Below, one piece after another: positions 8,042 to 64,000 of a stretch of DNA of 64,000 bases. Position 1 is the first letter of the stretch, and every line of letters starts with the position of its first letter. The translations under genes and the position numbers were made by a program. Origin of the DNA: Octopus bimaculoides (taxonomy: Eukaryota); NCBI RefSeq assembly GCF_001194135.2, contig NC_068997.1:43374341-43438340 (forward strand), written 5' to 3'. The notes beneath the pieces were generated by a model that was given only the letters and a program-made list of their open reading frames with translations, had not been told where the DNA came from and did not search any database.

Positions 8042-8080
<39 letters not shown>

Positions 8081-10149: not shown

Positions 10150-10181
<32 letters not shown>

Positions 10182-14963: not shown

Positions 14964-15004
<41 letters not shown>

Positions 15005-18452: not shown

Positions 18453-18728
18453 ATATATATATATATATATATGTGTGTGTGTTTATTACTGTTTCCTTAT
18501 CTTGGCATGACATGATAGTTGTTAACGAGTGTCTCCATCATTCAAACAGTGTGATTCATTTCCAATCTTCTGTGAAAACATGTCTGATCTTAGGAAAATA
18601 CTACCTTACCTGGAAACAAGTGGGTGGGGTTAGAGGAGGGACATCTGGCTGCAGGAAACCCACCTCAAGTTCAACCTGACACATGCAAGCATGGAAAAGT
18701 GGATGTTAAAGGGATGATGATAATGATA

Positions 18729-18773
<45 letters not shown>

Positions 18774-18879
18774 ACAGAACCTTTACATGGTTGCTCAACC
18801 AGCTTGAGATATTAGCCAAATGGTCATGTTTAAGATACTTTGATCTTAAGCTAACCTTGGGATTAAACAATTTGCCATT

Positions 18880-19290
18880 TTTTATCATCGTTTAACGTCC
18901 GCTTTCCATGCTAGCATGGGTTGGACGATTTGACTGAGGACTGGTGAAACCTGATGGCTGCACCAGGCTTCAATCTGATTTGGCAGAGTTTCTACTGCTA
19001 GATGCCTTCCTGACGCCAACCACTCCGAGAGTGTTGTGGGTGCTTTTATGTGTCACCGGCACGAAGGCCAGTCAGGCGGTACTAGCAGCGGCCACGCTCA
19101 AAATGGTGTATTTTACGTGCCACCCGCACAAGAGCCAGTCCAGGGGCACTGGCAATGATCTCGCTCGAAAGTCCTTACACATGCTGCGGCCACAAGTGCT
19201 AGAAAGGCGACGCTGGGCACAGGTGCCATCACGATTTCGCTTGCCCAACAGGTCTTCGCAAGCTGAGTTTCGTGTCCACGGGGATGAGTG
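18880..19290 (-). mobile_element. RTE 3' UTR copy (B1). Other short copies at ~27757-28000(+), 28750-28920(-), 29630-29960(-), 40642-40830(-), 46352-46562(-), 47975-48135(+), 51935-52130(-)
   Basis: Shared catcatttaac.tcc..ttccatgct.gcatgggttgga...ggatgcccttcctaa..ccaaccac consensus. Confidence 0.75.
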
Positions 19291-19690
19291 AACAGAAGCT
19301 GGGAGAGCTGGTCCCTAACTAGTCTGAAAGTACAGGATTGAATCAGCCTCTAAAGGATCTGAAGCTGGAGCTTATACAAATGAAAATCTATATACTGTAA
19401 GACTGTACCTGGTTTGTTTTATATCACAGACTACCACCACTGCTAATAACTGTTCTCTGCCATAGGACTAGAGTTGGCAGGGTAAAGTGGTCTATCTTTT
19501 TGCTGTACATGTTTCAGTCATTGAACTGCAGCCTTGCTAGGGCACCACCTTAAAGGGTTTAGTCGAGCAAATCAGTTTTTAAGTTTGGTACCTATTCTAT
19601 CAATGTCTTTTGCGAAACTGCTAAATTATAGGGGCGGGGCACAAACAAACCAACAATGCTTATCAAGTGGTGGAAGAAGATAAACAGAGA

Positions 19691-19766
<76 letters not shown>

Positions 19767-21393
19767 GGATTTCCACATATGTCCATATATCAAATTTCAC
19801 TCAGAAGACACTAGTCAGCCCAGGGCTTTAGAAGATGCTTGCCCTATAGTGGGACTGAACTCAAAACCACATTGCTGCAGAGCAAGCCTCTTAACCATAC
19901 AACCATGCCTTATCATTGAAAACCAGGTTTATTACTAGGAAGATTGCCATCTATGTAATTTTTAACATCAGCTCTTTAGTAACACTGGCCCAGCAGTAAT
20001 CCTATGACAGCCACAACAGCTACAGAATATGTTTTGGAATATGTTATTTTACAGATTTCGATCTTAGATGACAACCCTCCTCCCTTCTCCCACTCTTAGA
20101 ATATGACAATTTCCAGTTGACATTTTTTTGTCATATCATTGTATGTTTACACATAAACATGTATTTTAAAACTAAATTCTTTAAAATTTTAAATTACATG
20201 TATGTGTAATTGGTATTTGTTGTTTTAGCTCTGAGTTTGCTCTGAATGAGAGGACTTGTGGTTTCAAAAGAGTTCCATTTGTGACCATCCTCCTTTTTTT
20301 TAAATATCTAGGCCAAGACTACATTATTCATTGTTACCATATCTCTTTTTAAAAAACAGTTGTGTGTGAATTGAGGGAGATTTAGTTGCTACTTCTACCA
20401 GAACTCACAACCACATTGCCTCAGTTGTGTGTGTGTGTGTAATAAGTAGAATTACAAAGTCATACAGAAAGGTTGTGTACAGCTAGTCACTACTGAAACG
20501 ATTCTATCTGATTGTACTTTTACCAATCACAGATGAGTGCAGTCAGCTTGGTATCTATGTCCATAGATGTGTTGTAAACAGGCATTGTGTGTGTGTGCAG
20601 AAATTAATACACACACACACATTGTCAGTGAGTAGCTGTAGACTAGTTAGTGTAATTACTGATGAAAGTGGTAGTGGGAAGTTGGAGGATGTCTTTTACA
20701 TATGACACTTGTAATACTTGTCTCGTCATTAGCTTCCTTAGCTTGGCTGTACTGCACTATGTGTATGTCTGTGTCTTTGAACATGTTTGCATGTGTGTGT
20801 GTGTGTGTGTGTCAGTAGAGGTGAAATAAGGTATAAAATAATGCGGAAAAAGTAGAAAATGTCTAGCTGACTGAAAAATATGTGCATTATACATCTGTTA
20901 TTATTAAACAGCAGCAGAATATAGCAGTTACTGGTTGTGGTTATTTTCACCAATATGGTGGTGGTGGTGGTGGTGGTGGTGATGGTGGGTCACCAATGAA
21001 AATTTGACTGATTCCAGTCGTATTTGTGTGTGTGTTTATGTGAAGTTGTTGGTTAGTTGGGTGGACGTTGTGGAAAAAGTGTGAACAGTTGAAAAATGTA
21101 GAAAAGGTTTTAGTGGTGGGGAGGTCATGAAGATGTTCACAGAGTAATTCTTAATAGAATTGAACCTTGTGTTAAGACTGAATCCTTTCTAGGCACAAGG
21201 CCTGAAATTTTGGAGGAGGTGGGGTTAAGTCGATTACATCAACCCCAGTACTCAACTGGTACTTAATTTATTGACCTCAAAATGATGAAAGGCAAAGTCA
21301 ACCTTGGCAGAATTTGAACTCAGAATGCAAAGATGGACAAAATGCCTGAAAGCATTTTGCCTGGTGTGCTAAAGATTCTACCAGTTCACTGTC

Positions 21394-21394
<1 letters not shown>

Positions 21395-21430
<36 letters not shown>

Positions 21431-21592
21431 TAATCATCATCATCATCATCATCATCATCACCATCACCATCACCACCACCATCATCACCATCATCACCAC
21501 CATCTCCATCACCACCATCTCCATCACCACCATCTCCATCAACATCATCATCATCATCACCATCATCACCACCACCACCACCATCATCGTCA
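21395..21592 (+). repeat. Compound microsatellite (AAT)n(CAT/CAC)n
   Basis: Visible directly; source of the spurious poly-N/poly-H ORF. Confidence 0.95.
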
Positions 21593-22867
21593 TGTTCTCA
21601 CTGCACTGATGCTGTACCAGGCACAGACTCTCATGACTTCTGATCTTAACTGATTGGAAGTGTTATCATGTACATTGTTTTCTCTTGGTATAAAAGATGG
21701 GCTACAGCAAATATTCTGCTCAATACCATAGATTTGTTTGTCAGTTGCTTGATCTTAACCAGTTGAGCATGTCCCTTGGTGGCTGATGATATGTGCATCC
21801 CTGATCATGGGCAGAAGTAGTGGGGGAACATCATAGCCATGCGTTGTGAGGAATTCTTTGGGGTTTGAATAATTCACCTCTGGAAACATGGGTGTTTCAT
21901 TCATCATCCTTAAAACAAACCTTATTCAGGGACCTTTTGAGCAGAACGGGCTACTCGACTTGAAGAAAATTCTAACTGAGCCCCACCTGCAAGGTCATGT
22001 GCTGTTTATCTTGGTATGAGATCACCATGTCATGCACATATGGTTGTGGTTCATGTGCCTGGTGTACCCTTGTCAGAAGAGTAGTCATGATGGGTATATT
22101 GCGCTTCGTATATTTGTATCCCTGTGTCACTTTGATGGCATGCATTGCTCTCACTCACACAATAGTAATAATAGTAATAATTTTTTCAGCTCTAGGCACA
22201 AGGCCAATAGTTTTGAAGTGAAAGGATGTCAATTATATCAACCCCAGTACTTGACTGGTACATATTTTATTGACCCTAAAAGCGTGAAAGGCAAAGTTGA
22301 CCTTGGCAGGATTTGAACTCAGAGCATAAAGAGCCTGAAGAAATTCCACTTAACATTTTGTCCAACATGTTAGCAGTTGTGGTAGCTCACTGCCTCAATA
22401 GTAATAATTTCAAAAATAGACACAGGGTTTCCAGTTTAAATGAGAGAATGCAGTGAATTAACTTAACCTCCAGTACACAGTTATGTTATTTGTTAAAACC
22501 TCTTTATCTTCTCTCTGGAAAGGTGAAAGTTAAATTTGGTCTTAATAAAATTTGAACTGGGATGTAGGGACACAAGTAAAAAACTATAAAGGATTTTGTC
22601 TGATGTTGTACCAATTCTGCCACCACCACCACCACAACAACAGCAATAATAATACTTTCAAATTCTGGCTCAAGGCCAGCGAGTTCAGGGGAAGTAGGTA
22701 AGTTGATCATATCAACCCTCAGTACTCAACTAGTATTTATTTTATCGACCCTGAAAGGATGAAAGGCAAAGTCAACCTTGACGGAATTTGAACTTGGAAT
22801 GTAAAGACAGACAAAATAACTCTAAACATTTTTCCCAACATGCTAACAATTCTGCCAGCCTGCCACC

Positions 22868-22949
<82 letters not shown>

Positions 22950-22960
22950 TAATAATAAAT
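22868..22960 (+). repeat. (AAT)n microsatellite
   Basis: Visible directly. Many other (CA)n, (TA)n, (CT)n, (ATT)n and (CAT)n tracts occur across the window, plus (ACTC)n at ~28377-28432. Confidence 0.95.
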
Positions 22961-25090
22961 AATGTAAGAGGAAAAAATCTAAATAATACTTTACTGTTAT
23001 TAAATGGCCTAGATATTTGAAAGAATAACACTATTGTGCTGGTGATGGAACAGGGTGTATGATATAATAATTATACAGACTGCACCTATAGTGAGATGAA
23101 AAGTTTATAACTGAAGTGGTATAGTAAGTTGGGATGTCATTAATGAGGAGTGGAGGCCACAAGACCGTTGGATCTGCAATACTAAACTTCCCCCTCTCCT
23201 AATATGAAAAACACATCCAAAACGTTTGAAAAATATAAGCATAATCTGTCTTAGGTGGGCACTGCTATATAATCTGTCCTTGGCAGGCACTGTGATAGAT
23301 ATAATCTGTCCCACATGGTCATTGTTATAGATATAGTCTGTCCTAGTGAATATTTTATATAGTAAGACAATTTTACAAAAGCACCCTATGTATCTGTCTC
23401 CCTCACAATTATTTAATCACCTTAATTGTGTTTTTGCCCATCAATGATGGTCTGTCTGATGTTAACGTTGTTATATGCAGTTTGTATTATGTGGAGACTT
23501 ACATCTTTATAGGCACTGTTGTATTGTCTATCCTATGTGGACATAATTTCTCCTTTAGTCAGATACTGTTGTTTACAGTCTGTCTTACACAGATACATTT
23601 ATAAAATGTCCCATGCACTTCTCTCCCTCTCAAATATTTAATCACCTTCCTCCTATTTTCGTTTGTCAATGACGAATCATTGATATGTAAAAACATCTGG
23701 CTTTTTTTTTTTTTTTGCTCCTTTTGCCCTTGTCATCATCTCTCTTTTTCTTTGTCATCATTTACCTACTTCTTCACCATTATTTATCTTCTTAGCTGCC
23801 ATTCATTTTCATTATCGTCTGTTTTCCTCTTTTGTCACCTAAAATAATGTAGTCTCTGAAAATACAAAAATACAGGTTAGTCAATACTAGTACACCTTTG
23901 ATTACATGTCTGCTCAATCAGTGTCATCTTTGGACTAGACTGCAACAACATTTATATTTAGAGATCTGACTTACTATTTTTTACTTCTCTTTTGTATTAC
24001 TCACCCTTATTTCAAGAAACCGTTTGCCTGTCAGGTCTTACTCCAGTTCCATTACCACTTTACTTATTACCATTTTCCCAAATAATTCACAAAAATCAAT
24101 AAAATAAATAAGAAAAAAAATAACATTTAGTTCTGGAATGCCATTTCAAGAGTTATTTACAAAAATAAACAACTATTCAGTAGTTATGGAATGTGGGATT
24201 ATTATTATCGTCATTATTATTATTAATAATAATAATAACATAGCACTGGTTCTGGTTCTGGTATAATTCCCTATGGGTTAATTATTACTGAAACACTACT
24301 GCTTCTATAATTTCTTCAAATTATATTGAAAATACAAACAAAATCTCTCTCTCTCTCTCTCTCATTAACACAGGAATTTTTGCTAAGTTTTGTAACTTCT
24401 GATGCTTGTTTATGATGATGATGATGATGGGGTAGTGGTGGCGGCAAAATTGAAGTGATTGTAGATACAGCAATCTCTTGTGTTGTAGAAAGGTTGTATT
24501 CCTAAAAGCTTTGCTGTAATGAGGGAATTCTATAAAGCAACATCTATTTCCCTATTGATTTCCATGCAATAAATCGTGATGCATTCCTGTGTAAATTCTT
24601 GGAATAAATAAACAAAAAAACAAAAAACAAAAACCAATGCCAGTACTTGTATAACCATAACTAAAATATCTGAAACACGAGGAATCCTTGTGTATTGAGG
24701 ATGATGACGATGATGATGATGGCAATAGTGATGGTAGTGATGATGATGACAATAATGGTTAATGACAGTGATTCTACTTCCTCAACTGTTGTATCTATAA
24801 TGTTATTCTTTTGTAAGTTTTTATCATTTAGTTGGCAGAGAAGGGCTCTACCCATCACTTTTTGCAGAACATTTGTGCTGCACTTGGGAGCAGTTTGTTT
24901 TGCATCCCCTTTTTTTTTTTTCCATGCTAGCATCGGTTGAACAAATACATATTATCGAGACATTATTTTATAGTCAAATGCCTCCTCCACCTNNNNNNNN
25001 NNNNNNNNNNNNNNNNNNNNNNNNNNNNNNNNNNNNNNNNNNNNNNNNAATTGAAATCTACAGAAAAACAAAAGATGAAAACAGGTGTAT

Positions 25091-25137
<47 letters not shown>

Positions 25138-26780
25138 CACTAGTTTCATAAATGGCAATGCACAAAACTCTTGGCTTTTGAGTCACACTGTTGCTTCTGC
25201 TAAATATTAATAAAAATATATATGTATATATATACATATATACACATATATTGAGTTCTATTTTTCCCGTTTGCATCACCATACCTATACATATACTCTT
25301 TTACTTGTTTCAGTCATTTGACTGCGGCCATGCTGGAGCATCGCCTTTAGTCGAGAGAATCGACCCCAGGACTTATTCTTTGTAAGCCTAGTACTTATTC
25401 TATCGGTCTCTTTTTGCCAAACCGCTAAGTTACAGGGACGTAAACACACCAGCATTGGTTGTTAAGCAATGGTAGGGGGACAAACACAGACACACACACA
25501 CACATATATATATATACATATACACGACGGGCTTCTTTCAGTTTCCGTCTACCAAAGCCTTGTGAGTGGATTTGGTAGACGGAAACTGAAAGAAGCCCGT
25601 NNNNNNNNNNNNNNNNNNNNNNNNNNNNNNNNNNNNNNNNNNNNNNNNNNNNNNNNNNNNNNNNNNNNNNNNNNNNNNNNNNNNNNNNNNNNNNNNNNNN
25701 NNNNNNNNNNNNNNNNNNNNNNNNNNNNNNNNNNNNNNNNNNNNNNNNNNNNNNNNNNNNNNNNNNNNNNNNNNNNNNNNNNNNNNNNNNNNNNNNNNNN
25801 NNNNNNNNNNNNNNNNNNNNNNNNNNNNNNNNNNNNNNNNNNNNNNNNNNNNNNNNNNNNNNNNNNNNNNNNNNNNNNNNNNNNNNNNNNNNNNNNNNNN
25901 NNNNNNNNNNNNNNNNNNNNNNNNNNNNNNNNNNNNNNNNNNNNNNNNNNNNNNNNNNNNNNNNNNNNNNNNNNNNNNNNNNNNNNNNNNNNNNNNNNNN
26001 NNNNNNNNNNNNNNNNNNNNNNNNNNNNNNNNNNNNNNNNNNNNNNNNNNNNNNNNNNNNNNNNNNNNNNNNNNNNNNNNNNNNNNNNNNNNNNNNNNNN
26101 NNNNNNNNNNNNNNNNNNNNNNNNNNNNNNNNNNNNNNNNNNNNNNNNNNNNNNNNNNNNNNNNNNNNNNNNNNNNNNNNNNNNNNNNNNNNNNNNNNNN
26201 NNNNNNNNNNNNNNNNNNNNNNNNNNNNNNNNNNNNNNNNNNNNNNNNNNNNNNNNNNNNNNNNNNNNNNNNNNNNNNNNNNNNNNNNNNNNNNNNNNNN
26301 NNNNNNNNNNNNNNNNNNNNNNNNNNNNNNNNNNNNNNNNNNNNNNNNNNNNNNNNNNNNNNNNNNNNNNNNNNNNNNNNNNNNNNNNNNNNNNNNNNNN
26401 NNNNNNNNNNNNNNNNNNNNNNNNNNNNNNNNNNNNNNNNNNNNNNNNNNNNNNNNNNNNNNNNNNNNNNNNNNNNNNNNNNNNNNNNNNNNNNNNNNNN
26501 NNNNNNNNNNNNNNNNNNNNNNNNNNNNNNNNNNNNNNNNNNNNNNNNNNNNNNNNNNNNNNNNNNNTTCTCACAGTTTATATTTATATTTCAAGGTTTT
26601 TAACTTTTAAATTTGTATATTTAAAATAGATAGAAACTTCAAACTCGATATATCCAAGATCGATTTATTTACCACTCTATGTCAACATTTCTGTGCCCAA
26701 ACTTATCCAGTGACTGGTCCATTGGATTTCGACATTTGGCACTTCTTCTATATATATATAGCTTTATATATCTTTATATT

Positions 26781-26802
26781 TTCCTTAACTTTTTTATTAC
26801 AG
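26781..26802 (+). promoter_or_regulatory. U12-type branch site and 3' splice site
   Basis: TTCCTTAAC at 26781-26789, ending 13 nt before the intron end at 26802; matches the U12 branch consensus and its usual spacing. Confidence 0.9.
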
Positions 26803-27021
26803 TACATGATCATTTTGTTTCTTCTGTTCCTCATCCAGTTTTCTCTAGCTTGTGCATGTCTCGCTATGAATGATGCTCAGAAAGACTCTCTTGCAATTAG
26901 GGGATGGAAACTTGCTGGTAACAAGACTCGCTACGATGTGCAGTATGTGTTTAACTGTTGTGGACTCCAGGTAGTAAATGCACCAGTCTTATTGAACACA
27001 GGACACCCAGTGTGTAGTGGA
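26803..27021 (+). CDS. TSPAN13/31: Tetraspanin TSPAN13/31-like, coding exon 3 (TM3 and first part of EC2 with CCG motif)
   Basis: Acceptor ttattacAG at 26801-26802. 219 nt / 73 codons: YMIILFLLFLIQFSLACACLAMNDAQK...VFNCCGLQ...HPVCSG. Donor GTGAGT at 27022. Phase 0 at both ends. Confidence 0.95.
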
Positions 27022-41926: not shown

Positions 41927-42079
41927 ATTCCCTGTTGTGAAAATAACAGTGAATGCTGCACTGGTAAATCATCAAACATAACATGTCCATGCCAGCCATG
42001 TCTACCCAAACTAAAAGACCGTATACATCAAGCCTTCACCGTCACCGGTGCAATAGGATTGTTCTTTAGCTTTACTGAG
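41927..42079 (+). CDS. TSPAN13/31: Tetraspanin TSPAN13/31-like, coding exon 4 (Cys-rich EC2 and start of TM4)
   Basis: Not in the ORF track; translated by hand. Acceptor ttcttacAG at 41925-41926. 153 nt: IPCCENNSECCTGKSSNITCPCQPCLPKLKDRIHQAFTVTGAIGLFFSFTE. Donor GTAAGT at 42080. GLFFSFTE matches the family motif. Confidence 0.95.
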
Positions 42080-49926: not shown

Positions 49927-50708
49927 TTAACTGATGATTGCTCTCCTTAAAAATGTGTCTTTGTCTCAGTGGTGGAGATAGATAATTTTGTAATTTTAAA
50001 GGAATAGACTTGTGACAACTATAAATATAACATATAAAGCATTTCAGAGCATTTAGCTAGCAAAATGAGCTCCTATAAAAACAAGCAAAAGCAATTCCAT
50101 TGACAGGGAATATTTCTGGGGTTGCTGTATTGTATTCTGGCATCAGAGGGCTCTGTGAGGATTCTTTCTTAATTCGTCCTACCTAACAGATGGTCGCAGT
50201 ATTGAAGAGAAGAGTATGAGCCAGCAGACTAATATTCTAGAATTATCTAATTTCTAAACAGTTCTAATTTCCAATGCTAACCAATGTGAAGACTTGTACA
50301 TACACCTGTTGATTATCTCATTTTTACTTAAGCAAACACAATGATCATTATTCTTTGCTGATGAGGTTAGAATACAACCAAAATATGCCCAGAATTGTCT
50401 CCACCCTTTACCAAAAATAATTGTTTCTAACTATTGATTACCATTGCTTTTTATCTCACTGCATAATTATTTTTAGTTAACCATATTAACTCTTCTAACG
50501 CTAACACAACTGATTCTACAATTTAACATAATTCCCTGCAGTTCCTTTATGGGGTAAAATGCAGTAATTATTTAACATCCTCTTTGAAATACCATTTGTA
50601 ATCAGCACTTGTCTGTCTCGTTATCAGCTATGAAATCAAATTGAATGATTTGTTTGTATTTTCTTGCTAGCTACATTACTAACCAATCTAGTCGTTTCTT
50701 TTTTCTAG

Positions 50709-50783
50709 ATACTGGGTGTTTGGATTACGGTGCGATACCGTAACCAGAAAGACCCTAGAGCAAACCCCAATGCGTTTCTTTAA
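50709..50783 (+). CDS. TSPAN13/31: Tetraspanin terminal coding exon, proximal copy (5a)
   Basis: Acceptor ctttttttctAG at 50707-50708. [24 protein letters not shown] (TAA). Phase 0, in frame with exon 4. Confidence 0.9.
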   Translation: MLGVWITVRYRNQKDPRANPNAFL

Positions 50784-50969
50784 TGGTTACCACTTGTGTT
50801 ATCATTAGGTACAGTAAAGCCCCCTGAATTTTATCTGCCTCAGCTCTATGTATCTCTCTCTCTCTCTCTCTCTTCCCCTCTGCCTCATCTATATCCTTTC
50901 TTTATTTTCCTATTGCTATTGTGTTACGAAGTCAACCATTTCTTTTTTCTGACCCATTTCTGCTTATTC

Positions 50970-51135
50970 ACATATTTTTTATACTTTGCATATTTTATTT
51001 ATTTTGCTTATTTTATACAAACATTCCATACTTTATTACTTTGCATATTTCATAAACCCTTCATATTTTAAATACTTCCCATATTTCATGTAATTGCCAT
51101 ATTTTATATACTTCCTTGTATTTTATATAAACCCT
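50970..51135 (+). repeat. Degenerate ~18-nt tandem array (CATATTTTATATACTTYS) downstream of exon 5a
   Basis: About 9 units read by eye, ~190 nt after the 5a stop codon. Confidence 0.6.
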
Positions 51136-53496
51136 CTTTTATTGCAACTAAAAAGATTTAATTTTAAGCAGACATTTTATACATTTAAATATTTATATTT
51201 TAATTTTTTTTTTGGACATTTTTTGGGAAGAAAGGTATTGTGTGTACCTTGAAACTTTTTTTGACCTTTTGGAGGGCTTTTTGATGGAAACAGGGAACTC
51301 AATTTTGGGGGTAAAAAAAAAATTTAATGAAAGGTTTATTACAAAGTCTAGGAGATAGGAATAATATAGTACCATGAATCTGTTGACGGACTAATGTTAA
51401 CAGACTAATGTTTATCCTAATTTAGCAGTTGAAGTGGCCTAGTGGATAAGGTGTTTCTTTTTTTTTGTTGTTGGTGGTTTTTTTTGCTGAAAAGTTGAAG
51501 CTCATACTCTATGTCCAGAGTAAAAGCCACAAACTTCTTCACTTCCTCATTCCACTAGCAACACAATGGTATATGTTGGTAGGAAACTGTAGAGTTATGA
51601 TAACCTCATTGATATAGTGATAGTTGTAGTGATTTAGTGATGTAAGGATCTCTACTGCCATTAGCAGTACCCCTTTTAAGAAAAACACCGAACTGTTGTT
51701 AATTAGTTTGATATCAATCAGGACTGGATTGAGCAGGTCTATAATTAAAAGTGTTTCCGATTAGGACCCTCTAGTTTTATTTTGTTTTTTCAACAAGTAT
51801 TTGGGAATAAGTGTATTGTAGGTTACTTGGAATATTGTGATACAGAAGTAAAATAACAAAAAAAAAGACGAGCTTCTAACACTGAAAAAAGGAAAGTTGA
51901 ATAATTTTTATATACTTCAAGCCTATCATTAGAGGTATCATCATCCTTTAATGTCCATTTTCTATGTTGACATGATTTGAACAGTTTGACCAGAGCTGGT
52001 CAGCTGGAGAGCTGCACCAGCTTCCAGTCTGATTTGGCTTGGTTTCTACAGCTGCATGTCCTTCCTAATGCCAGCCACTTTACAGTGTATGCTAGGTGCT
52101 TTTTATGTGGCACCGGCACAGGGCTCTTGCAAACCAACCCTCTTCATTGGAGAATGGTATGAATACTTCTGCAGTAGAGGACAGGTTTTCTTGAATACTG
52201 CAAGGTGGTAGGTTCAACATAAACACACATTTCTAAACCATATACTTCCGATGATGGACCTTTGTGCTTGAAATATATAAAAATTATTCAACTTTCCTCT
52301 CCACATTCTTAGCAGCTCTCCATTTTTATTATTTCATTTAAGAATACATTATCCAATGTGTCCTTCACTTTTTGAAGATGGTAAGTGTGATTTCAAGGAG
52401 ATTTGGTTGTTATCTCTAGTTACCCTGTAGAACCTTGCTCAAGCTATTCCATGTATAGTTGAGAAGGAAAAGATCATTCAATGGAGTAAAATAACAAACT
52501 AGTTGGAGACAAGAGTGCAGTTGGGTTTAACTACTGTAGATTATTGCGAACTTAGTTTTTGGCTTAAAATCTAAGTATGAATAAATGAACTACACTGATT
52601 AAACTATCCCATCTTTATCTTATATATACATATCTTAGGATTTAGGTCTGTCACAAGCCTACAGGCTCATTAGGCTGGAGTTTCTCCCAGCTTCCATGGC
52701 ATACAAGAGACCAAGCATATATAGTGCTCCTATCCTTGGATGGTACATCAGCTCCTAACAGGGTTAGACTGGAGCAATGGGAAATGGAGTGTTCTGATTA
52801 AGAACACCTGTTCTGAGAATCAAAACCACAATTTTAGCATTGTAAATGCAACACCCTACCAACAAGGCCACATAAAGTATACACACACACATATAGTTTT
52901 TTTCACACATTATAAGCACCAGTTTGTTTGAGGTTGTAAAAGAAAACATTGTTTAATTGTTTCACTGATGGGGGCTTAAATCGTGTTATCTCTTATGTTA
53001 CTGATAACGCTACAGTCTGAAATTGGTGCTTATAATATCTAATGCCATTTATACTAATCTCTCAGTCATTAATTTCTAATTATGATATGTTATTAATAGA
53101 TATCAGATGGACTGTTTTGTTGAATCTGACAAATTAGCATCTCAGTTGTTCAGTCAATAGGACTATCTATTCATTGAATTATGTAATAAATGACTGAGTG
53201 AGTATTCTACAGACAATTGTACTCTTAATTTAATTAATGGTCATACAGAATCAGTGTATGACAAGGTTGTACTCTTTGAGTCACAAGTACAGTACATCTG
53301 ACAGGCTTTTTCCTAGTTTCTCTCTAATGATCTCACTAACAAGGCTTAATATTGACCCAAGGCTATGGTAGAATTTTTTTTTTTAATCCTTCAGAGGGAT
53401 TAGTAATTATATTATTAAGTTAGAAACTGGGATTGATTAAATTGGCAATTCTCTTCCATCAAATTTGTGGCATATGCTAATGTTGAAATTGATTGC

Positions 53497-53562
<66 letters not shown>

Positions 53563-53569
53563 CATTATT

Positions 53570-54281
53570 ATGGCTTTGAGTGTGAGCTGGCAAATTTATT
53601 AGCACACTAGGCAAAATACTTAGCAGCATTTTGCCTCTCACTATGTTCTGAGTTCAAACTCTGCCAAGGTCAACCTTGTCTTTCGTCCTTTCGGGGGTGA
53701 TAGAATAAGTACCAATGAAACACTGGGGTTGATGTAATCAACTCATTCCCACCTCCCCCAAGCTGCCCTTGTGGCAGAAGTTTGAAATAATAATAATAAT
53801 AATGATAATAATAATAATTATTATTATTAAGGCGGTGAGCTGGCAGAGTCATTAGCACACTGGGCAAAATGCTTAGTGGCATTTTGTCTGCCTTTATGTT
53901 TTGAGTTCAAATTCCAGTGAAGTCAGCTTAGAGTTTCATCCTTTCGGGGTTGATGAAATAAGTACCAGTTGAGCTCTGGGGTTGATGTAATCGACTAGCA
54001 CCCCTTCTCACAAAGTTTCAGGTCTTTTACCTATAGTAGAAATGACTATTATTATTATTAAGGTGAAGCTAGCAAGCTACTGGAATCACTACTGCGCTGG
54101 GCAAAAAAATGCTTAGCAGCATTTCATCCAGCTTTATGTTCTGAGTTCAAGTTCTGCTGAAGTTGACTTTGCCTTTCACCCTGTCAGGGTTGATAAAATA
54201 AGTATCAGTTGAGCACTGGGGTCGATGTAATTGACTAGCCCCCTTTCCCAAACTTGCAGGCCTTGTGCCAAAATTTGAAAC

Positions 54282-54317
<36 letters not shown>

Positions 54318-55125
54318 GGTGAAAGCAGCAAGCTGGCAAAATTGTGAACACGCCAGGCAAAAAGCTTTGTGGTACTTCATCCGTCTTTATGTTTTAAGTT
54401 CAAATTCCACCAAGATCAACTTTGTCTTTCATCCTTTCGGGGTCAATAAAATAATTATCAGTTGAGTACTNNNNNNNNNNNNNNNNNNNNNNNNNNNNNN
54501 NNNNNNNNNNNNNNNNNNNNNNNNNNNNNNNNNNNNNNNNNNNNNNNNNNNNNNNNNNNNNNNNNNNNNNNNCAACTTAACCCCTCCCCTCGAAATTTTC
54601 TTGCCTTGTTCCAAAATATGAAACCATTGTTATTATAATTAAGTTGGCACACTGGCAGAATCGTTTGCGCATCAGAAAATGTGTTAAGTAGCGTGTCTTC
54701 CAGCATTACGTTGTGAGATCAAATTCCACCAAAGTCAACTTTACCTTTCAGCCTTTCAAGGTCGATTAAATAAGTACCAGTGAAGCACTGGAGTCAATGT
54801 AATCAGCTTGTCCTCTTGCCCAAAATTTCAGACTTTGTACCTACTACTACTACTACTATTATTATTATTATTATTATTATTATGGTGATGGTGATGATGA
54901 TGATGTGCTTGCTGAATTGTTAAAGCATTGGGTGAAATGCTTAATGGCATTTCATCTGGATTTATCTTCTGAGTTCAAATGTTAGCAGCGGTCAACTTTG
55001 ACTTGATCCTTTTAAAGTTAAAATAAGTACCATCAGATGTAATCAACTATTCCTCTCCCCCATATTTCAGGCTTTATGCCTATAGTAGAAAGGATTATTA
55101 TTATTATTATTATTATTATTATTTT
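53570..55125 (+). repeat. Head-to-tail array of six family C SINEs joined by (ATT)n
   Basis: Copies start at ~53571, 53828, 54060, 54316, 54640 and 54905, each separated by a trinucleotide tract. Confidence 0.85.
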
Positions 55126-55230
55126 TTAGAAAGTTAAAGAAGTGATATTTTAAATTCTCAATCGCAGAATAATGCTAATAATATAGCCTGAACAGGATAA
55201 ACTATCCCTATTTTGCAGAGAAAAGTGTAG

Positions 55231-55309
55231 GTGACTAGCTGTGGACTCGAACTCACATCCCCGTCATTACATGTGACGATACTTTTGCCGATTAAGCTAA
55301 ACTACTCAC
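55231..55309 (-). pseudogene. tRNA-Thr(TGT)-like sequence (pseudo-tRNA or SINE head)
   Basis: Minus strand: A-box TAGCTTAATCGG, anticodon stem CGTCA/TGACG with loop CATGTAA, B-box GTTCGAGTC, and paired ends. Non-canonical A33 and imperfect T stem. Confidence 0.35.
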
Positions 55310-55628
55310 TACAAATTCCTCTGCAAATTAAGATATATAAATCTCGCTTTATGAGACGCTCTCATATGTTAAATTCAAATTACGACAAACGTAAATAAAC
55401 AAGCAAAGCTTGCTTTTAGAAGCGTTGAGATGTCTTTTTTAGNNNNNNNNNNNNNNNNNNNNNNNNNNNNNNNNNNNNNNNNNNNNNNNNNNNNNNNNNN
55501 NNNNNNNNNNNNNNNNNNNNNNNNNNNNNNNNNNNNNNNNNNNNNNNNNNNNNNNNNNNNNNNNNNNNNNNNNNNNNNNNNNNNNNNNNNNNNACGTTTG
55601 TCGTAATTTGAATTTATTATTATTATTA

Positions 55629-56165
55629 TGTGAGAGCAGTGCATGCGATCAAAATGACACTGGGGTAAAATATATGAAGCCCAGTATACCCATCATGACT
55701 ACCCGTCTGATAAGGGTACACCAGGCACATGCATCACAACCGTATGTGCACGACATGGTGATCCCATATCAAGATAAACAGCACATGACCTTGCAGGTGG
55801 GGCCCAGTTAGAATCTTCTTCAGGTTGAGTAACCCATCCCACTCAAAAGGTCCTTGAATAGGGGTTAAAAATGTTGAACGAGACCCCTATTTCCAGAGGT
55901 AAATTATTCAAACTCCAAAGAATTCCTCTCAATACATGGCTGTGATGCTCCCCAACTATTCCTGCTTGTGATATCAGAGATGCACTAAGGGACATGCTCA
56001 ACTGGTTATGGTAAAAAAAACTGACTAGCAAATCTGTGGTATTGAGCAGAATATTTGCTGTAGCCCATTTTTTATACCAAGACAAAACAATGCACATGAT
56101 AACGGTTCCAATCAGTTAAGATCAGAAGCCATGAGAGCCAGTGCCTGATACTGCATCAGGGCAGA
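55629..56165 (+). mobile_element. ~540-bp dispersed element, family D. Copies also at 21595-22160(-), 35405-35950(+) and a 3' part at 35130-35340(+)
   Basis: Shared start (GAGAGCA.TGCATGC.ATCAAA.TGACAC) and end (GTGCCTG.TACTGCATCAG.GCA then (ATT)n). No ORF or tRNA head recognised. Confidence 0.8.
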
Positions 56166-56809
56166 TGATATTATTATTATTATTAGAACATCAGACAAAA
56201 TGCCTTAGTGCATTTATTCTAGCTCACTACAATCTTGCTGAGATCAACTTTGCCTTTCAACCCTCTGAGGTCAATAAAATAAAGTACCAGTCAAGTACTG
56301 GAGTCAATGGTCAACCAATCCTTCATTCCTCAAAATTGTTAGCATTGTTCATAAATCAGAAATCTTTACAATTATTATAACAATGCTTGTAGCATATCTA
56401 GCACATTTCCATTAATCCTACACTTCAATTGGATTTGATTTCTGATCATCATTGGATGTCTTATTCCTGGATATTAACTGCTTCTCAAATGAGATTTAAG
56501 CTAAGAAGTTTTGTATCTAAACTAAGGGTAGTATAAGCAGTAGTAACTTATAAGATAAATATAGAGTTTTATGTCTAAACTAAGGATAACACAGACAGCA
56601 GTAACTTATAAGATAAAGCTATTACTAGCTTTAGAATTAATATTGGTATTTGAATTTAGTCTTGGGCTCATTGTAAGTCTCCTGGACGTTGCTGTCTTAG
56701 ATTCAAGGACTCATAGAACTGGTTACTCAGTTTGACGAATACCACAGCTAGACAAATACCCACCATACTCTGAAAATTTTGTTTCCCTGGACTTAGGCAC
56801 ATTAAAGCT

Positions 56810-57240
56810 TCAGCATCTGATAAGTGACTGGGCAGACACCCACAAGATTATCCACCATCTTTCTAACAACAACCTGTGGCACCTTTTCAAATTCCATATG
56901 TCTAACACTTGTGGACATGCTTACAAAATCAAAAAAACAATACAGCACCCATGACTTTTGGAAACAATTTTACACACTCAGAATTGCTGAAGCATGGAAT
57001 AAACTATCTGCATCAGTTGTTAGCTATCAGGACACTACATCCTTCAAAACTTCCATGCTTCCTGAAATTCATCAACAATACACCTGATGTCCCCTTTTTT
57101 TTTTCTTTTAAACTTTTGAAACAACTCATTCACTGTCCACCTCCTGTGCATTCTATGTACAGTTCTTGCACTTTTGTTTACTTTTTCTGATGAATTGTAG
57201 TGCACCTGAGTACTGTTTACAATAAGTTCATTATTATATA
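56810..57240 (+). mobile_element. CR1-type LINE 3' end relic
   Basis: NTCGHAYKIKK.YSTHDFWKQFYTLRIAEAWNKLSASVVSYQDTTSFKTSM resembles the CR1 ORF2 C-terminus (TRGH..K...R..FF..RV...WN.LP..VV...FK). Confidence 0.7.
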
Positions 57241-58703
57241 TATACGTGACAGAGATCAAAACATTGCCCTTGAACAGGACACCAGTTTGTCACAAGGTTA
57301 TTTATGGCTGAATAAACTGGAGTGACATGAAATGATATGTTTTGTTCAAGATCACAACATACCACCCAATATGGAAATCAAAACCGCAATCTTTTGTTTG
57401 TGAATGCAACACCCTAACCACCGGGCCATACACATTTACATTATGTACACATTCAAGAATAAAACACCTTATGACAATAATAAGAGATCATAACATAGTG
57501 TAGATAATAAATATATTTTAATGATGAGGTTGATAAATTAATCTCATCTTAGTAATAACAACTCATTATCTCAGATATCTAAACTGTTAATCTTAACTTA
57601 TTATTGTGGTGGAGGTCACATGTGTGCGTGATTGTTACCTTTCTTGAACTTAATTGCATCTTGAAATGTTTGCAGCACATTTTTCTTTATCTGTTTACGC
57701 TTGATTGTCGCTTTTATATTTATTTGCCATATTTTTTTATTTTTTAGTTTGTTTTTCTTTCTTTTTGTTTATTTTTGCTTTATGTACTTCATATGTCCAA
57801 TAGAAATAAAAATTGCTTGTTAATATTCCATTCTCTTTTTCGTTTTTCTGGATACCCCCACATTTCTCTATTTCATCAATTTGGTTTTGTAAACCTCCAC
57901 TTTACAATTTCTGTCAGTTCTTCAACTCTAATGCTGCTGCTCCTTTTCCATTGCATGGCCTCCAAGCTTTTTCTTATTTCTCTCTGCACCAGAAAAGACA
58001 TTGTGTGCCAAGTAAAAACGAAGAATTTTGGCTTCTTCAGAGTCATGAATTCCTTAGCCACTGCAAGTGTTGGACAAGATACTTGACTTTACTTGCCTAA
58101 AATTTTGTGCTTAATTAAGAAATAATTTTATTGCTGTTGTCATACTTATTATCAATATTGTACATTGTTGTAGTTGAAAAGTACAATAACTAAACTACTG
58201 AAATATTTGACTTGTCTTCAGGATCTTTAGTTCATATTCAGCTATAGATATTGTGATATTGCACTCTACATGGTTTAATTGAACACATACAAACACACAC
58301 ACACACACTTTATATATATATATATTAGAGACAAGAAAGTAAATTTTGAATGTAGCAAAGAAATATTGGGCATTTATCCTTATAAGACAGAAAAAAAGTT
58401 GCCAGCAGGTGACTCTGTGAATCGAAGCCTGTACTCCTCAGACACCAATTGTCTGCATTTGTTTATATTTGTTAATAAAACACTTTTGTATTTGAAAAGC
58501 TATTATTTAGCATTAAAATTGAAGGTAATTGTTGTCAGGGGTCATTTAGCTTAATGGTAGAGCGCATAGTCACCTGCTGGTAACTTTATTCCATCTTATA
58601 TGAGTAAATACCCAATCTTTCTGCTGTTTTCACTGCTTTACTGTATTCAAAATTTACTTTCTTGTCTGTAAATACCAACCCATTTGACACTTCCAAAATT
58701 CGT

Positions 58704-58736
<33 letters not shown>

Positions 58737-59849
58737 CTTTTTTCTAATTATTAGAGCTGCAAGATCACAAAAAAACTGCTACTCAGAGTTTCATGTTCCC
58801 ATTCGTTAGGCAGTTGTGATCAATATTTTCTTGATCACAACTGCTCAATGAACAGAAATGTGAAACTCTGAGTAGCAGTTTTTTGTTATGTTCTTGTAGC
58901 TTTAATAATAAAAAAGAGGACATTACTCCACCTCTGGTATTCAAGTACTATTTTTCTCCACCTTGTTTTGCATTTATATGCTTACTCATGTGTGTATATA
59001 TTTATATCCAAAATTATGGAATGGAGTAGATTCACATACATAGCAACCCCAATTGCTGACTGAACTATAGAATAACATTTTTTCATCTCATCAAACTTCA
59101 ATAAGGGAAAAATGTACATCCTTCTACAACAATAAACCATTATTGTTCCTGAAAGTTGTTTTTTATGCTTTCTACAAACTGCTTGAAACATACTAACTTC
59201 CTACACCTTGATCCTTGGATCTTACCTTTACACACACATATACATATTAAGATATTGAAAGTTCTTGCAATATCTTTCCTTTTGTCTGTATCATTACTAA
59301 TCTTTCTCTCTAAGATGATAAAGGGAAAAGCTTATTACAACAATGAATTTTCCTTTATTACATCCATTAAGCATGCATGCACACATACACACATGCTTAC
59401 ATACTCATTCATCCATGCATACATACATACATGTAGTGTATTCATCTACAAAGATTCTAATGGAGTGTTAACGGCATCAATTTCTCCCACTTATTCCTCG
59501 ATCTGTAAGGGCAATGTTCCATTTTCTGTTCAATATAAGAAATGTTTAAATGTTATCATTAGATGTTTAGAAATACATTGAACATAGACAGGTTGTGTGC
59601 GTGCATGCATGCATGCAATGATTTGTTTATGAAATAAAATAAAAAAACTGTCATTGGATTGTCGAGAAAAGGTCAAGTTGTTTTCTATTGAAATGTTTTT
59701 CCTAACATGATTTCTCATTCGGATTCAGTTTTCCAGCTAACATAGAACATTATTATTGTTATCATTGTTGTTGTTGTTGCTACTGTTATATTTGGATTTG
59801 GTCTTTGGATTTATATGTGCTACAATCCTAGCAGTAATTTTTGTGAATC

Positions 59850-60070
59850 TCTAAGGCTGAAAAGCTGGCAGAATTGTTACCATGCTGGGCAAAATGCTTA
59901 GCGGCATTTCGTCTGTCTTTACATTCTGAGTTTGAATGCCAGTAGAGGTTGACTTTCCCTTTCGTCCTTTCAGAGTCGATAAAATAAGTACCAGTTGTGC
60001 TCTGGGGTCGATTTCATTGACTAACCCTGCCCCTGAAACTGCTGGCCTTGTGCCAAAATTTGAAGCCAAT
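59850..60070 (+). mobile_element. tRNA-derived SINE, family C. Other copies at ~2820-3010(-), 3015-3235(-), 21185-21400(-), 22180-22400(-), 22645-22870(-), 34915-35090(+), 56170-56380(+)
   Basis: AAGG..GAGCTGGCAGAAT..TTAGCA...TTCTGAGTTCAAAT...CCTTTCGGGGTCGATAAAATAAGTACC...GGCCTTGTGCCAAAATTTGAA. Most copies end in an (ATT)n tail. Confidence 0.8.
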
Positions 60071-60387
60071 ATTTGTTCATCTCGCGTATAAGTCTTTCAG
60101 TAACTGTAGGATGAAAACAGTTTGGAATGAGGGGTTCATGACAGAATATAAAGAAAGTAACATGAGTGAGAAATATTAACTGTCCCACTCAACCAACAAT
60201 AATATCAAGTGTTGTTTTAACCCTTTAGCGTTCAGATTATTCTGTCAGATGAAATATTTATTTATCCACATTGTTTTGATTTCTATGATATGATTGTTTA
60301 TTTTTAAAGTGACAATGTAGAGTAGGTGTGAGGGGCCGGATATGGCTGGTTTGAATACTAAGAGGTTAATAGTTGGTTAACAATGTA

Positions 60388-60596
60388 CGAAGTATTGCTG
60401 AAAAGTTCCAAGCTTTAGATAAAAGAAAATACAGGAAAATACAGGATTTTATTCAACATTTTCCCCTCTCAGATTCACACACTTATTGCAACAGTCCTTC
60501 AGTTTCCTAAGCCCTGTAAAAGAATTCAGAAGGTTAGGCTTCCAACCAGGCCTTTTACAATGCCCCTAAAGTCAGGGACTTTTCAGCACCCCCTTG
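60388..60596. mobile_element. mariner-type MITE
   Basis: TA|CGAAGTATTGCTGAAAAGTTCCAAGCTTTAG ... CTAAAGTCAGGGACTTTTCAGCACCCCCTTG|TA: imperfect TIRs with TA flanks. Confidence 0.7.
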
Positions 60597-61004
60597 TATC
60601 TTACAAGAGTTCCTTTATTAGTTAATGTGTTGTTGGTAGAAGCTAGAAGTACATTAAGAGGATTTGGGAATATGTTTATAGAGTAACTCACTGCATGTTT
60701 GGCCTCACAAATGAGTTAAAGCAACATGGGAAAAGGGGAATTATAGTGATGAGGTTAATGGTGACAGATTTATTATTCTTTCATTTATCTTTTATCATTT
60801 ACATGTTTCATGCCATTAGACTAGCCATGCTGGAACACCGCCCTGAAGAATTTTAGCCAAACGAATTGACCCCAGTACTATCTTGTTTTAAAGCCTGGTA
60901 CTTACTCTATCAATCTCTTTTTGCCAAGCCACTAAGTTATGGGGATGTAAACACACCAACAATAGTTTTCAAGTGGTGGTGGGTGGCAAGCTAACACACA
61001 CACA

Positions 61005-61072
<68 letters not shown>

Positions 61073-62629
61073 GTGGACATCTTTAAGATTCTGTCTACCA
61101 AACTCACTCACAAGGCTTTGGTCAGCCCAAGACCATAGAAGACACTTGCCCAAGTTGCCACGCAGTAGGACTGAAAGCAGGACCATGTAGTTTGGAAGCA
61201 AACTTCTTACTACACAGCTATTTATTTTTCCTAAATTCATACACACATGACTATAGTCGTATGCTCATGTATTATATCTTTCCAACAATTAATTGTATAT
61301 GTTATGAAAGCTCTGGCTGAGGAGGGTCTCCACATTGGCCAGTAGGCATGGACCTTCAATTTTGAGGGAATTATGTCGTTGGTCAGAGGTAATGGGAGAA
61401 TTCTTTGCTATTCTCAATGCTTGCATGGGTCAGATGGAATTTGTTGAGACAGATTTTTCACCAGTTGGACGTCCGTCTTGTTAGCAACCCTTCAAGTAAG
61501 GTAAGATTCCTTGTGGCCAAACATATTTTTCGCAGAAGACTGGAAATAAAGAAAATGTTTGCTTTCAACCATCATGTGATGTAAAGATAAGAATACACAC
61601 CAAAGACACACATGCATTAGTTTGTGTGTGTGTGATAGGCTTCTTTCAGTTTTCATCTACCAAATCCACTAACGAAGCTCTGGCTGACCTGAGATTATAG
61701 TAGAAGAGATTTGCAAAATGTGCTGTTCACTGGGACTGAACCCAAGACCAAATGGCTGGGAAGTAAGCTCTTTAATCATACAGCCATGTCTGTGGCTGGA
61801 TAGATAGATACCATCATCATCATCATCATCATCAGAAGAAGAAGAATAGAAACACACACAGCCTTAATCTAATAATGTATTCAGGACTGATTACTGAAAT
61901 GTGAGGGACTACACTTCACATTTGGTCAAGGCCTTATTGCCAGCTTTGCACAATATATATCCTAGCTGCATATAATTCTGTATCACATCTGCAATAATCC
62001 AGCATTTTTATGACTACCAATGTGTTCATACTTTTCTTATTAAATACGTAATTCTAATTTTGGCATTTCAGAGTTGTCTCCCCTGTCTGATATATATGTT
62101 TTTCTTGCTGCAATCTTAATTAATTTTGATTAATTAAACATGTCTTGTTACTACGTTATGTCGGCACTGACTTAATTGTTTATTTTACGTGCATATGGTG
62201 ACTGCATGTCCAGATTGTCATTATGACTGTCAAAAGTAGATTTAATTAATTTTAGCCCTCAGGTTAATGTTGCAGGAGGAATGTTGATTGATGAAAAATT
62301 GTTTTTGCTAATCATGTTAGCAATTTTTGCATATTATGTTAGCAATGAATAAACTATTTGTTTTCCATGCTGATGGTATCCATCGGTGATTTCTGTCAGG
62401 TCATTGTTCTGGGATTTACTTTCAGTGTCGTTGACAAGTAAAAACAAAGTTGCAAGTTGACATAAAATGTCATAAAAACATTAAATATAGAGAGTGTGTG
62501 GGTGTGGGTGGGTTCATTTATTCAAAACTGAAGTTTCACTCTGCTGTGACCCCGAGCTACTATTACTTTCTTCATAAAAATGAAAATCCCAATGACTCCT
62601 TAAGACCTCCTTCACGAATATATTTCCTT

Positions 62630-63016
62630 AAGGAGTGGCTGTGTGGTAAGTAGCTTGCTTACAAACCATATGGTTCCGGGTTCAATCCCACTAGGTGGCA
62701 CCTTGGGCAAGTGTCTTCTACTATAGCCTCGGGCCGACCAAAGCCTTGTGAGTGGATTTGGTAGACGGAAACTGAAAGAAGCCCGTCATATATATATATG
62801 TATGTGTGTGTATATGTTTGTGTGTCTGTGTTTGTCCCCTCCCCCAACATCGCTTGACAACCGATGCTGGTGTGTTTACGTGCCCGTAACTTAGCGGTTC
62901 GGCAAAAGAGACCGATAGAATAAGTACTAGGCTTCCAAGTCCTGGGGTCGATTTGCTCGACTAAAAGGCGGTGCTCCAGCATGGCCACAGTCAAATGACT
63001 GAAACAAGTAAAAGAG
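62630..63016 (+). mobile_element. tRNA-derived SINE, family A, complete well-preserved copy
   Basis: A/B-box head (GTGGCTGTGTGGTAAG...GGTTCAATCCC), CORE-like CACCTTGGGCAAGT, internal (TA)n/(TG)n, and 3' half ending GACTGAAACAAGTAAAAGA. Confidence 0.85.
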
Positions 63017-63042
63017 TTATGTTGAAAACTATTACTCTATAC

Positions 63043-63191
63043 CAGTCATGGGCAAACTGCGACCAGCAGGACTTTCTGAATGACTCACCCAATGAAAAAT
63101 TACCCTGAAATTTTTTTAGTAGCGTGTTCTGTCTGATGATGAGCCATGTCTCATGTGGCCTGCTTCTCAAACAAATGGTTGCCCATGCCTG
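63043..63191. mobile_element. hAT (Charlie-like) MITE
   Basis: TIRs CAGTCATGGGCAAAC / GGTTGCCCATGCCTG. 8-bp flanks CTCTATAC and CTCTTTAT match at 6/8. Confidence 0.7.
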
Positions 63192-63399
63192 CTCTTTATA
63201 AACGACGGTTATGGTGAGTAATGGGAAACTCAAAGTGGCAATGAAGACCAAACCACACACACACATACGGCTTTGTATTTACTGTTTATATCACATTTTA
63301 TTTATATACATTGCTTATATTGAGTACTTTTTCCTTCTTGTTTGGACATTCAAACACACACATAGATTATAATTTAATTATTTCTTTATTCTCTTACAG

Positions 63400-63474
63400 A
63401 TTATTGGTGTTTGGTTGGCACTGCGATATCGGAACCAGAAAGATCCGAGAGCAAATCCAAGTGCATTCCTATAG
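63400..63474 (+). CDS. TSPAN13/31: Tetraspanin terminal coding exon, distal copy (5b)
   Basis: Acceptor ctcttacAG at 63398-63399. [24 protein letters not shown] (TAG). Phase 0, in frame with exon 4. Candidate AATAAA at 63937-63942. Confidence 0.9.
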
Positions 63475-64000
63475 CCATGGAATGTTAAATGTTACTTTGA
63501 ACATTACTCTGTCTCCCTTTCTTCCTCCTCTCAGTTTTTTTCTCTCTTTGTTTTATATTTCTTTCTCATTTTTTTAAACATTTCCTCTTCAATTTCTTCT
63601 TTCTCCCAGCAATATTCTCTACATTTTCCTGGTGTGGAGACTATTAACAACAACAATAATAACAACATAAAATCAATGAGGATATAACATCACACTTACT
63701 GTATACACACAGTTTTAATACTGTATTTGGGTTACTCTCTTTCTCTTTCTCTCTCTCTCTCGGTCTCTTTCTCTCTCTCTCTCTCTCTCTGGATATTTCA
63801 ACTGAAAGAAAATGAAGTCTACGAGTCTACATTAAATGTCTCCTATATAGTTTGGTTGTATCTATATGACAGAGGCAGTTTTGACAGGTGCTTCAAATTG
63901 TTTTCGCAAAACATTTTCCACCTGTTATTTGTTGATAATAAACATGTTGATAGAGAATACAAACAGCTCCTATATGAATCCCCCTCCCTGTTACCATGTG

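Follow-up and report, generated by a model that had tools for sequence, protein, structure and literature searches.

Results

Two homologous terminal coding exons in an octopus tetraspanin gene

The 64,000-nt window analysed here (Octopus bimaculoides contig NC_068997.1, positions 43,374,341 to 43,438,340 of the forward strand; coordinates below are positions in the window) holds, we conclude with considerable confidence, the 3′ part of a single tetraspanin gene of the TSPAN13/TSPAN31/Tsp97E subfamily. The gene has two homologous terminal coding exons, 5a and 5b, which very probably arose by an ancient tandem exon duplication, and isoform models predict that each octopus transcript uses one or the other. 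Either exon encodes the last (inner) 8 residues of the fourth transmembrane helix (TM4), a 16-residue cytoplasmic tail, and a stop codon; either product is a complete 225-residue four-pass protein. The two tails are assigned to types by the residues at the inner end of TM4, the T-type having W-I/L-T-V/I and the A-type having W-L-A-L/M.

50709..50783, + strand: exon 5a, proximal alternative terminal coding exon, T-type, isoform X1; 75 nt (24 codons and TAA), preceded by a pyrimidine tract and TAG (...tttcttttttctag)
63400..63474, + strand: exon 5b, distal alternative terminal coding exon, A-type, isoform X2; 75 nt (24 codons and TAG), preceded by a pyrimidine tract and CAG (...ttattctcttacag)

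The exons are neighbours of equal length and phase; their starts lie 12,691 nt apart, and the interval contains no further exon. Of the 75 nucleotides, 19 differ (56 identical), and of the 24 amino acids, 5 differ (19 identical); ten codons carry purely synonymous differences, and the stop codon differs as well. In particular, isoforms X1 and X2 differ at L/I203, I/L207, T/A208, V/L209, and N/S222. The exons were recovered by tblastn with E-values of 1e-12 to 1e-14 and by a profile hidden Markov model (HMM) of the family with E-values of 5e-12 and 4e-10. An initial annotation of this DNA had given the same coordinates, length, phase 0, peptides, and difference counts, all of which proved exact on recheck, and had described the flanks as dissimilar, in agreement with a comparison of ±1.5 kb around each exon, where nothing is shared apart from the exon and low-complexity (CT)n runs.

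Both terminal exons are compatible with a single upstream splice donor. The last codon of exon 4, GAG, is complete at 42079, the donor GTAAGT follows at 42080, and the exon is in phase 0 to both tails; the exon pair is defined by a shared donor (42079|42080), an acceptor for each tail, and two intact reading frames. Joining exons 2–4 to 5a or to 5b reproduces residues 22–225 of two O. bimaculoides RefSeq proteins with no mismatch: the 5a join corresponds to tetraspanin-13 isoform X1 (P0193, XP_014787634.1), and the 5b join corresponds to tetraspanin-13 isoform X2 (P0196, XP_014787636.1). Octopus sinensis has the same isoform pair (P0072 and P0195). The proposal of one tetraspanin gene with two alternative terminal coding exons is thus upheld by both joins and by the single occurrence of the upstream exons; both octopus isoforms are already known, as public RefSeq models.

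Upstream exons and subfamily assignment

The gene model was built by tblastn of relatives' and octopus proteins against the window, and the boundaries of the three upstream coding exons are canonical.

6803..6970, + strand: coding exon 2 (LVAFILIG...HHQVLLFF), comprising the end of TM1, the small loop, and TM2; exact match to residues 22–77 of P0193/P0196; family HMM E-value 8e-27
6971..26802, + strand: intron 2, U12-type (minor spliceosome), ~19.8 kb; donor GTATCCTTT at 6971, branch site TTCCTTAAC at 26781–26789, 13 nt before the acceptor
26803..27021, + strand: coding exon 3 (YMIILF...HPVCSG), comprising TM3 and the beginning of the large extracellular loop, CCG motif included; exact match to residues 78–150; HMM E-value 5e-24
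41927..42079, + strand: coding exon 4 (IPCCENN...GLFFSFTE), comprising the remainder of the large loop and the outer portion of TM4; HMM E-value 2e-15

Exon 1 (MVCGGFACSKNALAALNILYI) was not found over the window by regular expression or tblastn, and it must lie upstream of window position 1. Intron 1 is ~14.7 kb in Argonauta, and the O. sinensis gene spans 112 kb.

Pfam PF00335 matches residues 10–211 of both isoforms (E-values of 2.8e-21 for X1 and 1e-21 for X2; 77–78 bits versus a cut-off of 32.1). In the translation, the tetraspanin large-loop signature is split between exon 3 (NCCGLQ) and exon 4 (PCC...CC...C.C..C), and the conserved 16-residue tail motif of the subfamily is encoded in 5a and 5b alike. 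The homologue searches, one of them with a 187-residue model as query, gave E-values as low as 1e-112, and every match carries the name tetraspanin-13, -31, or 97E. No solved structure was found for the TSPAN13/31 subfamily; the best PDB match is UPK1B, with an E-value of 0.05.

Intron 2 has a U12-type donor and branch motif at the homologous position in all eight genomes compared (octopus, Argonauta, Haliotis, Lineus, Apis, amphioxus, Saccoglossus, and Ptychodera). Intron 2 of fly Tsp97E and of human TSPAN13 is on a published list of U12-type introns (PMC2831892).

Age and spread of the exon pair

The initial annotation had left the pair to be looked for in other molluscs and cephalopods. It is found there: T/A isoform pairs of one gene are annotated in ten other genera, all as isoform models.

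Gastropods: Pomacea, Gigantopelta, Haliotis, Aplysia, Biomphalaria
Bivalves: Ostrea, Magallana, Mizuhopecten
Chiton: Liolophura
Nemertean: Lineus

In all four genomes in which the order was read (Octopus, Argonauta, Haliotis, and Lineus), the proximal exon is of the T type and the distal one of the A type.

Argonauta hians, locus L005 (gap-free): exon 4 29232–29384, T 30060–30134, A 38658–38732, nothing between the tails
Haliotis, locus L002: T ~17272–17349, A ~23696–23782
Lineus, locus L001: T ~13357–13440, A ~14083–14166

The tails cluster by type and not by species, with mean differences of 1.9 for A–A comparisons, 4.1 for T–T comparisons, and 5.9 for T–A comparisons, and the A-type tail is nearly invariant across Spiralia. 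Because the tails group by type and share the T–A order, the duplication is older than the split between molluscs and nemerteans, and no homogenisation of the copies has taken place since. Evidence that bears on expression comes from oyster, where short, intron-less Logan contigs encode the full protein with an A tail (P0248) or with a T tail (P0245–P0247, P0249, and P0250); assuming that such contigs are assembled RNA, we take them to show that a mollusc makes both mRNAs.

In insects, the proximal exon is T-type and the distal one has diverged (RefSeq isoforms P0222, P0224, P0230, P0234, and P0235), which suggests that the T/A arrangement dates to the protostome ancestor. Specifically, the distal tail of Apis cerana is VIAAFLAKHYRNQLNPSLKTIFP (locus L004, 12302–12373), located 232 nt downstream of the T exon, while in ants, beetles, and moths the distal tail is often longer and ends in NYLY, NFIY, or DYLY (P0222, P0230, P0234, P0235, and P0288). 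The tyrosine motif of the insect distal tail resembles a YxxO sorting signal, a motif that is absent from the T-type tail. In Gigantopelta aegis, a third tail, IIGVWLTLRYRKQTKHHVP, is annotated beside T and A (isoform X5, P0204); the family HMM, run in six frames, detects no such additional tail exon in the octopus window.

3′ ends and mode of splicing

Comparison with Argonauta reveals a conserved block at each of the two terminal exons.

50678..50859, + strand: conserved block around 5a, spanning −31 to +76, that is 88.6% identical to Argonauta over 185 nt; conservation does not extend further
63874..63950, + strand: conserved block at the end of the 3′ untranslated region (UTR), with a candidate distal poly(A) signal; 77% identity to Argonauta

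A match to the branch-site sequence TACTAAC is located at 50677–50683, beginning one base 5′ of the 5a block. Downstream of the 5a stop, AGTAAA at 50813–50818 (30 nt after the stop) is the sole hexamer resembling a poly(A) signal within ~260 nt and is conserved in Argonauta. Downstream of 5b, similarity to Argonauta reappears only at 63874–63950, where AATAAA at 63937–63942 (+463) occupies the same alignment columns as ATTAAA in Argonauta. We infer that AGTAAA and AATAAA are candidate proximal and distal poly(A) signals, respectively. Two poly(A) regions are proposed because a conserved, hexamer-bearing block follows each exon; with separate 3′ ends, 5a and 5b would be true alternative last exons.

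On this model, the exon 4 donor would be spliced to either homologous terminal exon. When the proximal T exon (50709) is used, the transcript would probably end at the nearby poly(A) site, for which AGTAAA is the candidate; when neither the proximal 3′ splice site nor its poly(A) site is used, transcription would proceed 12.6 kb further, and the A exon (63400) would be used. Isoform choice would thus be a competition between proximal splicing and cleavage, on the one hand, and elongation to the distal exon, on the other, and the two outcomes would differ in the inner-leaflet face of TM4 and probably also in the 3′ UTR. The isoforms may differ functionally, in TM4 packing or partner choice or in UTR-dependent mRNA fate, and the choice between them may be regulated.

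The same two proteins would be produced without a UTR swap if 5a were a stop-bearing internal cassette, like that of KRAS 4A/4B, that is spliced on to 5b and shares the distal 3′ UTR and poly(A) site. We regard this arrangement as improbable. A conserved AG|GTACAG is present 25 nt after the 5a stop (50808|50809), within the Argonauta-conserved block, and a stop so near a downstream junction would escape nonsense-mediated decay; in Apis, the T exon is followed by a donor-like ATG|GTGGGT. However, GTACAG is a poor donor, and a scan of the 200 nt that follow the T stop in Octopus, Argonauta, Haliotis, and Lineus found no site with 7 or more of the 9 donor-consensus positions. In addition, AGTAAA is in the same conserved block as the GTACAG, and the end of conservation at +76 is consistent with a poly(A) region of compact size.

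Relation to vertebrate TSPAN13 and TSPAN31

The initial annotation had pointed to a contrast between vertebrate TSPAN13 (LTYRYRN) and TSPAN31 (LAMRFRN) at the position that distinguishes the octopus exons, and the retrieved sequences bear it out: TSPAN13 tails have WLTYRYRN, and TSPAN31 tails have WLAMRFRN or WLAVRYRN. The octopus gene belongs to the same subfamily as these two genes and shares with them the MxCGGFxCSKN N-terminus, the 16-residue tail motif, and the U12-type intron 2, and the same TM4 position differs, WLTY (Thr) versus WLAM/WLAV (Ala). In contrast to the octopus gene, a single gene that switches 24 residues, the vertebrate proteins are encoded by two genes and differ throughout. 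Human TSPAN13 has a single RefSeq isoform (PMC6773723).

The consistent discriminator between T and A is just one Thr/Ala position, one transition apart, and the TSPAN13 tail is about as far from spiralian T tails (3.8 differences) as from A tails (3.7 differences). In Branchiostoma belcheri, Saccoglossus, and Ptychodera, no second tail exon was found in the last intron or in the 7–10 kb downstream, and the single exon is A-like, with WLAV. Because the discriminator is a single Thr/Ala position, TSPAN13 is equidistant, and the sampled invertebrate deuterostomes have one exon, the vertebrate split is more likely a parallel to the exon duplication than a partition of an ancestral exon pair. The suggestion in the initial annotation that the exon duplication may parallel vertebrate gene duplication therefore holds as the more likely of the two, in view of the single-exon state of amphioxus and two hemichordates. 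Isoforms X1 and X2 of this gene are annotated in the hemichordate Glandiceps talaboti (X2 being P0257) and in the crinoid Antedon mediterranea (X2 being P0290), which are relevant to the question of a deuterostome second tail.

Accordingly, we consider it unlikely that a T/A pair already present in the bilaterian ancestor was partitioned into TSPAN13 and TSPAN31 after genome duplication, with independent loss of T in amphioxus and hemichordates. We lean instead, with moderate confidence, towards a pair that originated in the protostome ancestor, more than 500 million years ago, with the inner-TM4 Thr/Ala position being a functional toggle that vertebrate gene duplication reinvented. Neither reading turned up in the literature searched.

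In Mizuhopecten, Liolophura, and Biomphalaria, the T isoform is named 'tetraspanin-13-like' and the A isoform of the same gene is named 'tetraspanin-31-like' by NCBI, and the situation in Eufriesea is similar. Evidently, the 24-residue tail alone flips the best vertebrate match in automatic naming.

Selection on both copies

Comparison of 5a with 5b by the Nei-Gojobori method yields 1.57 synonymous substitutions per synonymous site (dS), which is near saturation, 0.13 non-synonymous substitutions per non-synonymous site (dN), and a ratio (ω) of 0.08. If all 18 coding differences were neutral, the probability of five or fewer replacements and no stop would be 4e-5. Across species, the T tail protein is identical in O. 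bimaculoides and O. sinensis, and each exon is identical to its Argonauta counterpart at 72 of 75 nt, with non-synonymous changes at two of three positions in the T exon and synonymous changes at all three in the A exon. The values of ω and dS, and the conservation of both types in molluscs and a nemertean, agree with the proposal in the initial annotation of an old duplication with both copies under purifying selection.

It is very improbable that 5a is an unused or decaying duplicate in octopus and that X1 is an artefact of protein-homology modelling. All the single-isoform annotations (O. vulgaris P0192, Argonauta P0194, and UniProt P0197) and the sole cephalopod-like RNA contig (P0073) have an A-type tail, and the Argonauta T exon carries N12S in the otherwise invariant RYRNQ motif, as a decaying copy might. 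Yet in O. bimaculoides and Argonauta the T exon is intact and retains its acceptor, branch site, and stop, and an O. sinensis isoform model carries the T tail; the exon differs from the T exon of Haliotis (abalone) at just 1 of 24 residues, although T-versus-A synonymous sites are near saturation; the intronic flanks of the T exon are more conserved than those of the A exon; and contigs read as T-type mRNAs are found in oysters.

Several points weigh against the reading of 5a and 5b as two selectively maintained alternative last exons. Under a cruder neutral model that assigns half of the differences to a single unconstrained copy, P = 0.20; because this pairwise value is indecisive, rejection of a dead copy is based on cross-species conservation. 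The non-synonymous changes relative to Argonauta (two of three in T versus none of three in A) may indicate weaker constraint on T, but the counts are too low to decide. The octopus RefSeq isoforms X1 and X2 are computational (Gnomon) models. As to the 3′ ends, the separate 5a poly(A) site is read from one non-canonical hexamer in a conserved block, and the tails are just 232 nt apart in Apis and 651 nt apart in Lineus, where they may be alternative 3′ splice sites within one terminal transcription unit.

A single locus

The family HMM, constructed from 208 family members and run against all six-frame open reading frames (ORFs) of at least 12 residues in the window, finds exons 2, 3, 4, 5b, and 5a once each, with the next match at an E-value of at least 0.9. 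By tblastn and the HMM, no second copy of exons 2–4 is present on either strand of the 64-kb window. The initial annotation had reported no second copy of exons 1–4 between the tails, a statement that stands for exons 2–4 and does not extend to exon 1, which lies outside the window. The ORFs between 5a and 5b are low-complexity or repeat-derived and include no nested gene. Two assembly gaps are located in this interval, at least 3.7 kb from either exon (3.7 kb after 5a and 7.8 kb before 5b).

53534..55130, strand not assigned: tandem array of ~250-nt units with (ATT)n stretches, containing the first gap; five to nine copies at a spacing of 240–253 nt, no coding signal
55443..55593, strand not assigned: second assembly gap, 151 N, non-coding; no adjoining tetraspanin-like ORF

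The first gap (54471–54572) has copies of the array unit on both sides, with an array spacing across the gap of 319 nt. Its position within the array, and the gap-free Argonauta interval with no extra exon, support the earlier view that the gaps hide no paralogue. A mis-join and a separate paralogue, the events named by the initial annotation as fatal to its reading, were looked for in the sequence and not found, the layout being the same in Argonauta, Haliotis, and Lineus.

That there are two genes or an assembly artefact, with the distal exon belonging to a hidden paralogue or having been brought in by a mis-join or haplotig, is most improbable: the two gaps are of merely estimated length, but there is no second set of exons 2–4 in 64 kb, the first gap lies inside a non-coding tandem array, the independent Argonauta (gap-free), Haliotis, and Lineus assemblies have two tails behind one upstream exon set, and 25% nucleotide divergence with unrelated flanks excludes haplotigs. 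On the HMM result, the gap context, and the Argonauta layout, sequence data rule out a hidden paralogue, a haplotig, and a mis-join to the extent that such data can.

Repeats in and around intron 4

Units like those of the 53534–55130 array recur at ~56240 and at ~59850–60090, and the array is probably a SINE-like (short interspersed nuclear element-like) or satellite repeat typical of the genome. A decayed DNA-transposon remnant is located in intron 4 (~43690–44880, + strand), with an ORF containing a DDE_3 endonuclease domain (E-value 1e-15) and a neighbouring ORF, in another frame, containing an HTH_33 winged helix (E-value 9e-6), which indicates that the element is frameshifted.

Discussion

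Tandem duplicated exon substitution is reportedly the subject of work by Kondrashov & Koonin in 2001 and Letunic et al. in 2002. The octopus exons resemble this class in being adjacent, homologous, and of equal length and phase, in yielding isoforms that differ just in the homologous segment, in the predicted use of one exon per mRNA, and in having an ancient origin with both copies under purifying selection. They differ from it in that the pair is terminal and carries the stop, such that the choice is probably tied to the poly(A) site and not to internal skipping. Tandem exon duplication that gives rise to mutually exclusive homologous exons, usually ancient, is well described (Abascal et al. 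2015, PMC4465641; PMC4494069; Martinez-Gomez et al. 2022, PMC9741552). The pair occurs in protostomes but is missing from human TSPAN13 and TSPAN31, and it is therefore unlisted in human-centred catalogues; "TSPAN" does not occur in the text of PMC4494069.

The KRAS 4A/4B exons are likewise tandem, homologous last coding exons that provide two C-terminal, membrane-proximal segments. In KRAS, 4A is a cassette exon, for which 4B then acts as the 3′ UTR. In contrast, separate 3′ ends appear more likely for the octopus gene, and the octopus exons encode part of a transmembrane helix, whereas the KRAS exons encode a lipidated targeting tail. The KRAS pair has been conserved for >450 million years (PMC9882654). 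With alternative last exons in general, the octopus gene shares a proximal and a distal exon, each having a 3′ splice site, a stop, and an apparent poly(A) signal; most alternative last exons are unrelated in sequence, whereas the octopus pair is homologous and both proteins are full-length.

No description of the exon pair in TSPAN13/31/Tsp97E genes was found in the literature searched, the searchable literature being incomplete. Protostome-wide conservation may be a modest addition to what is known, and possibly one that is undescribed. The annotation of the octopus gene is unchanged, both isoforms being in RefSeq for O. bimaculoides. What the locus provides is a clean case of a known theme: a 24-codon terminal exon whose duplication predates the divergence of molluscs from nemerteans, and probably also that of insects from both, with the order and the inner-TM4 Thr/Ala signature having been kept since the duplication, and with vertebrates showing the contrast between paralogous genes. 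The pattern suggests that the inner-leaflet end of TM4 is tunable and important for function in the little-understood TSPAN13/31 subfamily, and an isoform pair with just five differing residues is well suited to swap experiments.

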